From: Pavona decussata
Lineage: Eukaryota
NCBI GenBank assembly: GCA_977016875.1
Contig: CDRNST010000229.1
Span: 124,001-188,000, forward strand
Direction: 5' to 3'
DNA: 64,000 bases
Notes under the pieces: generated by a model
Database searches by the model: none
Seen by the model: only the letters and a program-made list of their open reading frames with translations
Told to the model about the DNA's origin: nothing
Position numbers and translations under genes: made by a program
In this document: one piece after another, positions 50,622 to 62,111 of the stretch
How the letters are laid out: the number at the start of each line of letters is the position of its first letter
How positions within the stretch are numbered: the stretch's first letter is position 1

Positions 50622-53600
50622 TTAACATTTTCTTGAAAAAATATTCACAAATTTTCTAAACGAACTTCTCTTAGACTTGAGATACTCTTCAATTTCCGAC
50701 TCTTTGTTCATTTGTGCATAATCGGCTGCATCTTTTCCATCTGCTGTAGTCAAACTGACATCAACTTTCAGCTCAACAAGCTTTTTCACAACTTGCATGT
50801 TACCATGGATCGCTGCCAAGTGCAGAGAAGTGAAACCATCACCATCGCGGGCATTGATGTCAGCCCCGTGTTCTACCAAGAGTTTGATGACTTCTTCATC
50901 GCCCACTTTACAGGCAATATGTAGTGCTGTTTTGTTTTTCCTCTCTGCGGTAGGTTTATCGTCAACTATAAGAATTTCTTTTTGTTTGTTGGCTGGTGGA
51001 TCTTCTCCCCATCCTGAAGCAAGAACAGTGCCAAAATTAGCCACGTCTATGCTGCCATCTTTCGTCTTCTTGTGGAACAATCCGGATGTAGCCTTCTTTA
51101 CCTCAACGTAATGCCAGGCCCGTTTTCCCTTGTCTTTGCCACGTACTAGAAATATATTGTCTTTTCGTTGGTACTTATCACGGATGCACGTATCAGCCTT
51201 GCTTTCAAGCAAAGTTTTGACAAGATGTTTGTGTCTGTTTTGAACTGCCAGATGAAGTGGAGTTATTCCACTGTTGCTTTGCAAATTAATATTGGAGCCG
51301 GCTTCTATCAAAAGCTTTGTGATGTTAACAAATCCTTCCCTGGCGGAGATGTGCAGCGCCGAGTAACCCTCATCTTGGATGTAGTCTGTACCAACTCCAG
51401 CCTGGACAAGAAAGTGTACAGCCATGTAGTTATTCCAGTAAGTTGCCATTATTAGAGGCGTACATTGGTCTTCTCTTTGAGCGTTCGTATCAGCTCCAAG
51501 ATCAATAAGTGTTTTAATGAAAACACCTGAACAACGCAGACTCGCCCACAGTAAAGGTGTTCGATTGCCCATTGCAGCAATGTTGACATCCATACCGTGA
51601 TTCAATACGAGTTCCACGGCCTTTTCTGCATCATTTTTGTCTCCGCATCGGTGTAGCTCTGCCAAGGTCCCATACTTCTGTAATGTCTCTTCATAAAGTT
51701 CCTTTATCTTGGCATGGTGCCGCTTTTTAAACGTCGAAAAGATATCACAGGCAGTCTTTGAGGGCGAAATCTTAGCGTTATTTGCGGTTGATTCGAAATT
51801 CATCTCTCTCGGAAAGTTATCAAGAAAGATGTTAAGAGTTGTTACGGTGGCATAAATTCCCTCATAGACACTGGCTTGGAGCAGATTGAATCCCGAGACT
51901 GGGTCAGCTGCTAAAACAGCCATTTTGGAAAGACATATAAGGCTGGGCTATGATGAAAAAAGAAAACATGCTATTATTTAGTTTTATGAGCCAGTTCCGA
52001 GAAAACCTAAATTTACAGTCAACATTTCTCTTGACGTTTTGCTGAAAATGATAGGGTATTTTCTAATTTATTCCAAGCTTGGTTTTGTAAGAAATGTAAT
52101 GATGTAGTCTCTAAAGAATAACCAGGCAAAGATAATCTATTCACTAGGTACTTAATCTCGTACCCAGATCTTCCACGGTCACATTTCCAAACCTGCAGTG
52201 AGACCTGGGTGCAAGATTAGTGTGTATCTAACTATGAATGCCTCACCGGTTGTTGAAAACTGGGAGTTGCACCATGCCTCTTGAGAATTTGTATGATCGG
52301 TTGGTGATTATGGCGTTCAGCTTTCTGCAGAGCTGTTTTCTGAAACTGAGGGGCAGAAATAATCCAATTTAGATAGGGGAGGAATGGAAGAAAGAAGAGG
52401 GAGGTTGACTTTAATTTATGGTATTAACCGTAAACCTTGAGCTCATTACAAATCCAATCCAAGATGATATGACGGTGTATATTTTTTTTGTGAAAAAATG
52501 GTCCATTTTAATGAAAAATGATTATTGTTCCAGAAAATCCAGTTTTCTTTGCAATTTTTAGATTGAAGTCCTAGAATTTTGCCAAGAATAGCGTTACCTA
52601 AGCTTAACCTAGCTTCTTGGTGTGTTCGCTTGTCGTGCACTTGTCGTTTTGCCAGTGATAAGAACCTCTACAACGTCGACGGCCGACAGTGAAAGAAAAT
52701 GACGAAGACACCTATTGTTTCTGATAACACAAGAGGCCTTGTATTGGGTGCCAAGCATTGATTGGACAGTTAAACATGTTTATGGGTGGCATTGGTTTGT
52801 TTTACGAGAGCTATTTTGAAGTGATGGTTTTTTTCAGAAGGTGAAATTAAAAGGACTAAAATTTGTTAGCTTTTCATCAAATGCTCAAGAATGGGGGGAG
52901 AGTAGGCTAACTTACATTCAAACAAGCTGTATAGAAAGATTTGATAATTGTGAAAATGTTTTCCTTGGAAGCCATTAGCATGACCATGCAATCGAAAACC
53001 CTGACATGTTTTTTCTTTTGTGTTTTGGCTTAAAGCACAAAATTGCAGAAACAGAAAAACCGCTTTAACCATTGGAACATCAAGAATGCAAAAAAGAATT
53101 GGCATGGTGATCTGTGTTGAAAACTCCTCCTTTAGTTATTTTTTTAGCAAATTGTTTTATGCTTACTCTATCTGTGGCGTTGACATCTGCACCGTGCTCT
53201 AATAACAGATTAACAACAGATTCCTGTCCGTACCAAGCAGCCAAATGGAGAGGAGTCAACGAAAACTGGAAAAAAAATGTTAATGGCTCGATAAGAAGGA
53301 TGGAATTTCCCGGTGTTGAAATAGACAGAATAATGTGACATAATGCATCAAAATATGAATAGATAAATAAATCTACCTTGTTTAGAGTATAAAGCTTTCG
53401 CTGTTAACATCAAACAAGCAATCAAAAAATGATAATAACTACTATTAACAGAAAAAAATACCTTATCTCTTTGGTTTACATCTTCCCCATTATCAAGAAG
53501 CACTTGAACAGCCTCCAACTGCCCAGCAATTGCTTCCTCATGAAGTGCTTTTCTAGACTTCTGAAACCGATAACGTGACATAAAAACGATTTGTTTATTT

Positions 53601-61500: not shown

Positions 61501-62111
61501 TTATATACCTGTACTGCTAGTTTCATCTACTCCATTTTCAATCATGATTTTATGTTTTATCTCACTATTTTTCTCACTGTTTACGTCGATGTTACTTTCG
61601 GTTTCCGAGGCCGGAAGTACTGATTTAAATACGATTAGCAGCACAAGCAAATCAAAGGAATAAATATTCTGTTATTCCGTATCATGAAGTCCTTGTCTAA
61701 TAGTTTATCATACATTTACCCCGAACCTTTTCTTGTTTTCTTGAGTAAAATTGAAGGCAAAATGGATGCCTTACCTGCCGGAGCGTTATCCAACACGCAA
61801 AGCTCATTCTTTTCATGATAACCAGCTTTGTAAACTTGACTGGTTCCATTGTCCCATTTCACCTTTGCCATGTTCTCTGCTAAGCTAGAAGAATCAGTTC
61901 CAATTTCCACAACTGTCCCCACATATCCCTCTCCGCCGTCACCTTCAGCTTCATTTGACTTCCAATCGGGCCCCCGGACGACACGAACACCAACGGAGAA
62001 GGTACTGGCTGAATCACTGTTTGCAGTTTCTTCGCCCGGTTCATTAGCTCTGTCTTGTTGTAAAGAAGAGTCTTTTGATACGAAAGACAGTGGCTTGTCA
62101 GTCGCAGGCAT
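50622..62111 (-). CDS. Mind bomb-derived protein (~881 aa): Mib-Herc2 / ZZ zinc finger / Mib-Herc2 + ankyrin repeats + inserted unnamed domain; no REP or RING domains
   Basis: Exons 62111-61775, 60386-60209, 59567-59342, 54806-54564, 54126-54088, 53560-53462, 53265-53167, 52345-52247, 51947-50622 join in frame (2646 nt). Motifs VGVRVVRGPDW...GDGGEGYVGTV...VKWDNG; CCSC...CLVC...CTSC...H..DH; VTRGAGW...YRRGYQGKVDLKC...GGHYYKSHLPRLG; then ankyrins. The start codon is provisional. Confidence 0.85.
53649..53889. mobile_element. MITE (cagttgttcaaag...ctttgaacaactgg); second inverted copy at 58557-58801
   Basis: TIRs plus an internal sequence shared with 58557-58801. Confidence 0.8.
54967..55453. 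mobile_element. piggyBac-like non-autonomous element
   Basis: ttaa|ccctttcacc ... aaaggg|ttaa termini. Confidence 0.6.
56500..56875. mobile_element. MITE with ccgggg(n)tactc / gagta..ccccccggg ends
   Basis: Inverted termini flanked on both sides by tctaga(t); internal repeats of ccctgtttaagaca. Confidence 0.75.
57118..57204. mobile_element. Short palindromic MITE
   Basis: cctgcgagcaagctctcttgggg / ccccaagagagcttgctcgcagg. Confidence 0.8.
57298..58526 (+). mobile_element. Non-autonomous Crypton-like element with (CAA)n tract and internal ~130-bp direct repeat
   Basis: Ends are homologous to 8125-8432. Terminal hairpin aacaattattcca...tggaataattgtt; relic TIKATKLGMTLFN followed by a splice donor; direct repeat ~57856-57985 vs ~58060-58185. 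Confidence 0.55.
58557..58801. mobile_element. MITE, same family as 53649-53889
   Basis: ctggccccagatgttcaaaggccggataactttatcc / ggataaagttatccggcctttgaacaactggggccag. Confidence 0.85.

Follow-up and report, generated by a model that had tools for sequence, protein, structure and literature searches.

A Mind bomb-like MZM head on an ankyrin tail: a nine-exon gene of the coral Pavona decussata without Mib repeats or RING fingers

In a 64,000-nucleotide stretch of the genome of the coral Pavona decussata (NCBI GenBank assembly GCA_977016875.1, contig CDRNST010000229.1, here C229, positions 124,001 to 188,000; the whole stretch is called the window and all coordinates are counted from its first letter) a gene was identified on the minus strand that joins an MZM module (Mib-Herc2, ZZ, Mib-Herc2), as found at the head of Mind bomb ligases, to an ankyrin tail that is not the one of Mind bomb. 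It is one protein-coding gene of nine exons and 881 residues, which is conserved in several stony corals and of which an orthologue is transcribed as one spliced messenger RNA (mRNA). The protein contains neither Mib repeats (REP) nor a RING finger, and on balance we favour, for the product of this single MZM-ankyrin gene, a role as non-catalytic adaptor or competitor.

In all animals Notch ligands are activated by Mind bomb ligases, whose docking head for the ligand and catalytic RINGs have, to our knowledge, so far been seen only together in a single protein. In this coral gene evolution has separated the two, with the head kept under selection, transcribed (in the orthologue) and carried on a foreign scaffold that would not ubiquitinate.

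Gene model and evidence for a single gene

The nine exons lie between 62111 and 50622, keep one reading frame and are separated by introns that are all of the GT-AG type; their summed length is 2643 nucleotides, or 881 codons. The preliminary description, which was made from the DNA letters alone, had joined nine exons in frame into an 881-residue protein, and its model was borne out by the lengths and splice sites at these coordinates, as was its order of Mib-Herc2, ZZ, Mib-Herc2 and ankyrin domains when Pfam was run exon by exon. In full the protein consists of a Mib-Herc2 domain, a ZZ finger, a second Mib-Herc2 domain, an acidic linker, a 13-residue mini-exon, three ankyrin exons of a single repeat each and a 441-residue ankyrin exon with a stop codon. 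The exons were searched singly, and for whole-length comparisons the protein P0270 from another coral stood in for the joined protein. The exons of the model are as follows.

E1, 61775-62111, minus strand: ATG at 62111; Mib-Herc2 domain 1, preceded by an N-terminus of about 38 residues; phase 1 at the 3' end
E2, 60209-60386, minus strand: ZZ zinc finger (Pfam ZZ, 2.1e-06, above the cut-off)
E3, 59342-59567, minus strand: 15-residue linker between the ZZ finger and the second Mib-Herc2 domain, then Mib-Herc2 domain 2 (Pfam MIB_HERC2, 1.3e-14)
E4, 54564-54806, minus strand: closing strand of the MZM (VDLKC...HLPRLG) followed by about 57 residues of acidic linker rich in Ser; the last Mind bomb-derived exon
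E5, 54088-54126, minus strand: mini-exon of 13 residues (39 nucleotides, phase 0); the first exon of the ankyrin-family unit
E6, 53462-53560, minus strand: one ankyrin repeat of 33 residues (99 nucleotides, phase 0; Pfam Ank; matches P0085 and P0270)
E7, 53167-53265, minus strand: one ankyrin repeat of 33 residues (99 nucleotides, phase 0; Pfam Ank, 8e-11)
E8, 52247-52345, minus strand: degenerate ankyrin-like repeat of 33 residues (99 nucleotides, phase 0)
E9 or tail 1, 50625-51947 with the stop codon at 50624-50622, minus strand: 441 residues (Pfam Ank_2, 1.7e-49)

The same nine exons are collinear and in the same orientation in three further coral sequences, L001 (from a close relative), L004 and L008 (Desmophyllum pertusum), whose tails are 87, 68 and 59% identical to that of the window, respectively, and which also share the glycosyltransferase neighbour of the gene. 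The ATG of E1 (Pfam MIB_HERC2, 5.5e-18) is preceded by an in-frame stop codon and holds the same position in L001, L004 and L008. The acceptor of E3 (59569-59568) is kept in the same three sequences and agrees with the transcript P0270; an alternative acceptor at 59522, which would give 866 codons, was ruled out since P0270 and three other genomes show the 15 additional residues. The mini-exon E5 measures 39 nucleotides with AG and GT in place in L001 and in L004, the introns of which can no longer be aligned, and the length and splice sites of both E5 and E6 are kept in L004 despite a synonymous divergence of about 1. Because an ATG located just 5' of E6 in the window is not conserved while the E6 acceptor, length and splice sites are kept, E6 is internal rather than the first exon of a gene. 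E7 is 100% identical in L001 and 85% identical in L004, E8 is conserved in L001, L004, L006, L008 and L003, and the acceptor of E9 is kept in all the relatives compared. The RefSeq paralogues P0085 (Stylophora) and P0105 (Porites) join segments similar to E6, E7, E8 and E9 at exactly these boundaries, and the E7/E8 and E8/E9 junctions agree with P0270 as well.

P0270 is a protein of 880 residues encoded on an intronless JGI contig of 3057 nucleotides (L022), which has an in-frame stop codon 5' of the ATG and an untranslated 3' end. The protein comprises E1 through E9 in order, including the 15-residue extension of E3 and the mini-exon, and is exon by exon about 65-69% identical to the window. 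Since the contig is too short to contain the introns and is about 65% identical to the window exons, it is regarded as the spliced mRNA of an orthologue. Two proteins of Oculina patagonica, P0271 (RefSeq LOC144665666 isoform X2) and P0273 (GenBank hypothetical protein, ACROYT_G030573), also combine MIB_HERC2, ZZ and ankyrin domains without REP or RING. The preliminary description had assigned the MZM and ankyrin exons to one gene, instead of separate genes or an MZM spliced to RING-coding exons, and this assignment was confirmed in the relatives (P0270, P0271, P0273), not in the window species itself.

The search that brought up P0270 used an alignment led by a paralogue of 642 residues. Many of the 430-600-residue matches from another search were open reading frame calls on genomic scaffolds of the TARA metagenomes and not transcripts, and a HMMER search using exon 9 was dominated by giant ankyrin proteins, the summed repeats of which give high scores, and was uninformative on N-terminal extensions. 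P0243 (1140 residues) was considered as a fusion relative and rejected; its tail is similar but it has no MIB domain.

Three observations weigh against the single gene. The E4-E5-E6 and E8-E9 joins are supported by the orthologue of about 65% identity and by models from other corals, not by a P. decussata transcript. In Desmophyllum the E8-like exon (L008 9209-9307, MU825884.1) has a TAG two codons before its donor in place of the CAA or CAG of other corals, either through a genuine truncation or through a fault of the assembly. The GenBank annotation of Desmophyllum also splits the locus into a 467-residue protein with MIB_HERC2 and ankyrin domains, which ends at this TAG, and a 436-residue tail protein. 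Such a split would fit two genes, one made up of the MZM and small ankyrin exons and ending at or just after E8, the other a single-exon gene that consists of the 441-residue exon and starts from an internal ATG (51923). The internal Met, located in the motif 'SKMA', is kept in close orthologues, and read-through of the E8 donor in the window meets a stop after four codons. However, the same Met is absent from P0085, P0105 and P0273, the transcript P0270 continues from E8 into the tail, and the RefSeq models of Stylophora, Porites and Oculina make the same join. In addition, E8 is open in the window, L001, L004, L006 and L003, and the acceptor and phase of the tail are conserved everywhere, so that we consider two separate genes very unlikely.

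Origin of the head and of the ankyrin tail

Taken in order, exons E1 to E4 of the single gene can be aligned with human MIB1 residues 7-69, 72-126, 144-205 and 208-230 (PDB 4xi6), and as the alignment ends at residue 230, the Mind bomb-like part stops where MIB1 enters its Mib repeats. Every Cys and His zinc ligand of the ZZ finger is present in E2 and aligned with that of MIB1. E4 has no Pfam domain, and elsewhere in the genome it is matched only by the MIB locus on contig C191.

When the head of P0270 was used as query, nearly all matches listed below the corals and a dozen mollusc entries were annotated as MIB2 or MIB2-like, came from many phyla and had 43-50% identity. A long loop in Mib-Herc2 domain 1 is common to the head, bilaterian MIB2 and the loci on C191, C169, C35 and C164, but not to the MIB1-like locus on C103. 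Judged by its best matches and by loop length, the head is of the MIB2 rather than the MIB1 type. It was aligned collinearly with eight bilaterian MIB2 proteins, to the heads of which it is about 47% identical, compared to an average of 72% among themselves. Column-by-column identities counted over the exon rows showed that 80 of the 125 positions invariant in these eight proteins are kept in the coral head, and 28 invariant columns, including the second Trp of DWxW in both Mib-Herc2 domains, are lost in all three RING-less proteins. The erosion of the RGPDW motif differs by lineage: in domain 2 (window 59342-59521) it reads RGAGW in the window, RSAGW in L001 and RGPDW in L004 and L008, and in domain 1 of L004 (L004 3732-3941) three residues are missing at this motif.

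A six-frame scan of the assembly (602 Mb) gave 19 MIB_HERC2 matches, two of them on C229. No Mib repeat (SH3_15, PF18346) was found on C229, the matches to this model being located on C191, C103, C164, C169, C35 and C144. No RING finger (zf-C3HC4_3, PF13920) was found with Pfam in any exon, nor on C229 in the genome scan (135 genome matches; 150 of the 265 candidates scored). By their domain order, in which MIB_HERC2 is followed by Mib repeats and then by two or three RINGs, the loci on C191, C103, C164 and C169 are four canonical Mind bomb genes. The frame of E9 closes with a stop codon; 3' of it come a second tail exon and, farther on and on the opposite strand, a glycosyltransferase gene. 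REP and RING were likewise not found with Pfam in the orthologues P0270, P0271 and P0273. The earlier claim that both are missing thus stands for the exons, for C229 and for the proteins of the three relatives, and since the protein has no RING, it cannot be a RING ligase.

Lone matches to Mib-Herc2 domain 1 occur at C35:3951622-3951813 and C44:2118797-2118991. They are near-identical to the MIB2-like genes on C164 and C35; the genome scans showed neither a second domain nor REP or RING close to them, and they may be gene fragments or partial duplicates.

Homology to a coral ankyrin family starts inside E5 (P0270 residue 332 against P0085 residue 105) and continues to the C-terminus with 54% identity, whereas the same region is 25-28% identical to the ankyrin region of MIB2 (Lingula MIB2), which corresponds to generic ankyrin similarity. 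The claim that the tail differs from the ankyrins of Mind bomb itself was upheld by this comparison. Because family homology begins in E5 and the identity to MIB2 ankyrins is so low, the graft point is located at the phase-0 intron between E4 and E5. On the exon pattern, E5-E9 belongs to a large ankyrin family specific to corals, whose standard unit has a mini-exon, three exons with one repeat each and a large terminal exon with an alpha/beta insert. E9 begins with the '(P/L)SL...SGFNLLQA' head that is shared by more than 30 loci in the genome. Most of these are arrayed on C251 and C170 and none lies beside an MZM; other family members carry unrelated N-termini, and only the E1-E9 locus carries an MZM head.

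The arrays on C251 (about 1.03-2.12 Mb) and C170 (about 0.02-0.62 Mb) are tandem and contain more than 25 terminal exons of the family with open frames of up to 1230 residues; these exons all start with the 'SLK...SGFNLLQAAV' head after the acceptor and vary in the number of ankyrin repeats.

The AlphaFold model of E9 (mean predicted confidence, pLDDT, 86) shows a helical head, ankyrin repeats, an insert, two more repeats and a long C-terminal helix. The insert is located as follows.

Insert within the ankyrin array of E9, 50958-51176, minus strand: about 70 residues (about 260-330), strand-strand-helix-strand-helix, with strands at 265-283 and 306-313 of the model

Its sequence (LVRGKDKGK...W.YV.V...FG.VL.SGWG.DPP) has W, V, G and P columns that are invariant across 23-25 members; for some array members on C251 and C170 the match is confined to residues 1-257, and the insert may be missing there. 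The insert had no match in Pfam or NCBIfam and no structural match above Z 3.5; folded alone, it reached a pLDDT of 67 and a best structural Z of 3.5. It is a hallmark of this branch of the family and may be an undescribed small domain.

Selection, the second tail and putative function

Ratios of non-synonymous to synonymous substitution rates (dN/dS) against L001 were 0.14-0.55 for E1-E4, with the highest value in E1, and at most 0.06 for E5-E8; against L004 they were 0.08-0.34 over all exons. The MZM head is maintained coding sequence under purifying selection, as is the gene in several stony corals. Tail 1 has a dN/dS of 1.16 against L001 (L001 9995-11311; 59.5 non-synonymous and 14.5 synonymous differences, no indels), compared to 0.43 against L007 and 0.28 against L004. 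This pattern points to a very recent, fast change and to recent relaxed or diversifying selection in tail 1 only.

These values also bear on whether the gene could be a decaying relic, in which a duplicated fragment of MIB2 came to lie by chance upstream of an ankyrin gene and has no function. The eroded motifs, such as RGAGW in the window and the three-residue gap in domain 1 of L004, would agree with decay, as would the dN/dS of E1 against L001. Yet the reading frames are undamaged, start codon and splice sites have been preserved, dN/dS stays well under 1 across four genomes between which synonymous change is saturated, and an orthologue yields a spliced transcript, all of which makes a relic hardly credible.

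3' of tail 1 the window contains a second copy of the terminal exon.

Tail 2, 47053-48372, minus strand: intact paralogue of E9, 439 residues, 61% identical to it, with the same AG acceptor and phase

The gene might have switchable C-termini, ending in tail 1 (51947-50622) or, when this is skipped, in tail 2 (48372-47053), which would be compatible with an adaptor or competitor role of the product. Tail 2 keeps its AG acceptor, polypyrimidine tract and phase though the upstream intron has diverged, it is intact and constrained (dN/dS 0.18 against L001), and no second copies of E5-E8 lie between the two tails. AATAAA signals are located 268 and 280 nucleotides past the stop codon of tail 2, and none is visible within 800 nucleotides past that of tail 1; the pair of tails is kept in L001, L007 and L006. 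On the other hand, a join of E8 to tail 2 appears in no transcript found, the species of L004 has a single tail, and tail 2 has an ATG four codons in, so that it could stand alone as a separate gene. Part of the stretch 3' of tail 1 is hidden by a run of 235 N (49911-50145). Alternative 3' ends are therefore proposed only tentatively, as somewhat less probable than a single one. A long (AATC)n microsatellite lies at 48440-48520 (minus strand), about 70 nucleotides upstream of the tail 2 acceptor.

As to function, MIB1 uses its MZM to bind the N-box of JAG1 and Delta via a central Asn, and in flies most of the activity of Mib1 comes from the MZM (PMC11887331). Mib1 without its RINGs has been used as a dominant negative (PMC5945229), and competition is also the mode of action of a MIB1 fragment containing the MZM (PMC12957853). 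The preliminary description had suggested that the protein may be a decoy, a dominant negative or an adaptor for MIB-type substrates. By analogy, we infer that the coral protein most likely serves as an adaptor or competitor. In the way that MIB1 docks on the N-box of JAG1 and Delta, the MZM head would recognise short motifs with a central Asn in cytoplasmic tails, and without a RING the protein itself would not transfer ubiquitin as Mind bomb does. The ankyrin tail would either recruit another partner or just block access by the four canonical Mind bomb ligases.

Several features of the head tell against this proposal. The remaining 45 of the 125 MIB2-invariant positions are changed, including the second Trp of DWxW in both Mib-Herc2 domains; RGPDW of domain 2 has become RGAGW in the window, and the L004 species has a shortened domain 1; and the REP half of the two-site grip on the ligand is missing. 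Given the changed positions and the missing REP half, binding of Notch ligands is not to be assumed, and as the head is both diverged and single-sited, its target may no longer be a Notch ligand.

A head repurposed in this way, which no longer recognises Notch ligands and serves as a new docking or bait domain on a fast-evolving ankyrin family that has expanded in tandem, for example in immunity or symbiosis, would be in line with the change of about a third of the MIB2-invariant positions, the loss of REP and an identity to MIB2 of about 47% compared to a mean of 72% among the MIB2 proteins of different phyla. The size of the tail family (more than 30 loci, with arrays on C251 and C170), the dN/dS of tail 1 against its closest relative (1.16) and the unrelated N-termini of other family members point in the same direction. 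The MZM exons are, however, under purifying selection and retain the zinc ligands and most core residues, and the tie of the family to immunity consists of expansion and rate of change alone. We therefore regard a repurposed head as a possible but rather unlikely alternative.

A further reading would make the gene a natural, germline-encoded modulator of Mind bomb signalling, either as an N-box decoy on coral Delta/Jagged tails that tunes the activation of Notch ligands or as an integrated 'bait' copy of the MIB2 head on the ankyrin family. As a bait it would resemble the integrated decoys of plant immune receptors, in that a factor targeting MIB2 would be caught by the head and reported via the ankyrin tail and its insert. 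We consider this modulator role, in either form, doubtful.

Neighbourhood and comparison with known systems

Introns 3 and 5 (window 58518-58834 and 53591-53987) contain a short dispersed element in both orientations with frames of the type '...VVQRPDNFI(R/Q)WI(R/S)H...', which is probably a repeat similar to miniature inverted-repeat transposable elements or short interspersed nuclear elements. The other features of the window are the following.

16306-17775, minus strand: reverse-transcriptase open reading frame of a retroelement
32251-34197, minus strand: 648-residue single-exon ankyrin protein, read as Fem-1-like, with Pfam ankyrin repeats only
37658-39123, minus strand, and 44171-45421, plus strand: divergent pair of Glyco_transf_43 genes (glucuronyltransferase-type), the synteny of which with the MZM gene is conserved in other corals

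Elsewhere in the assembly (C51:451395-470006) a cluster of exons encodes numerous DSL domains in tandem, as many as about ten within a single open frame of 615 residues, and is unlike ordinary Delta/Jagged genes.

In other corals the architecture described here already figures in public annotations, where it has no name or is divided between two records, and a narrow literature search turned up no published description of a MIB_HERC2-ankyrin coral gene. The present model corrects the records of Desmophyllum, which split the gene in two, and gives a description to those of Oculina, which leave it unnamed. It also opens a way into a functionally uncharacterized family of more than 30 coral ankyrin genes. 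Should the head still bind Delta/Jagged tails, the gene would be a built-in coral competitor of ligand activation and a naturally occurring equivalent of the RING-deleted dominant negatives of the laboratory; should it bind another target, it would be an example of an MZM module that has been retargeted.

Among known proteins, HERC2 also has a Mib-Herc2 domain and a ZZ finger. It is a giant HECT ligase with RCC1 repeats, and its domains differ in order and number from those of the coral gene. MIB2 (skeletrophin) resembles the coral protein in the order of the MZM, in the closing VDLKC...HLPRLG strand and in the long loop of domain 1; the coral gene differs from it in the absence of REP and RINGs, in ankyrins that are not those of MIB2 (25-28% identity) and in 45 of the 125 head positions. 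To MIB1 (PDB 4xi6/4xi7/4xib) the coral exons E1-E4 align in order over residues 7-230, but the MIB1-like locus on C103 has a short domain 1 loop, and MIB1 enters REP where the coral protein enters its acidic linker.

The proteins P0271, P0273 and P0270 share MIB_HERC2, ZZ and the ankyrin tail with the coral gene and like it have neither REP nor RING; P0271, as isoform X2, has another N-terminus in place of Mib-Herc2 domain 1, and P0273 has no linker, mini-exon or E8-like repeat. P0085 (Stylophora, 'PP6 regulatory ankyrin repeat subunit C-like') and P0105 (Porites, 'uncharacterized protein') are 52-54% identical to E5-E9 and have the same junctions and the same insert, but other N-termini with no Pfam domain there.

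The closest functional parallels are the RING-deleted Mib1 construct and MIB1-223aa, which is encoded by a circular RNA; both are Mind bomb fragments that have the substrate-binding end, no ligase activity and act by competition (PMC5945229; PMC12957853). These are a laboratory construct, which keeps REP and the MIB1 ankyrins, and a tumour-associated peptide, respectively, and both consist of MIB1 sequence, whereas the coral gene is germline-encoded, conserved and provided with a foreign tail.

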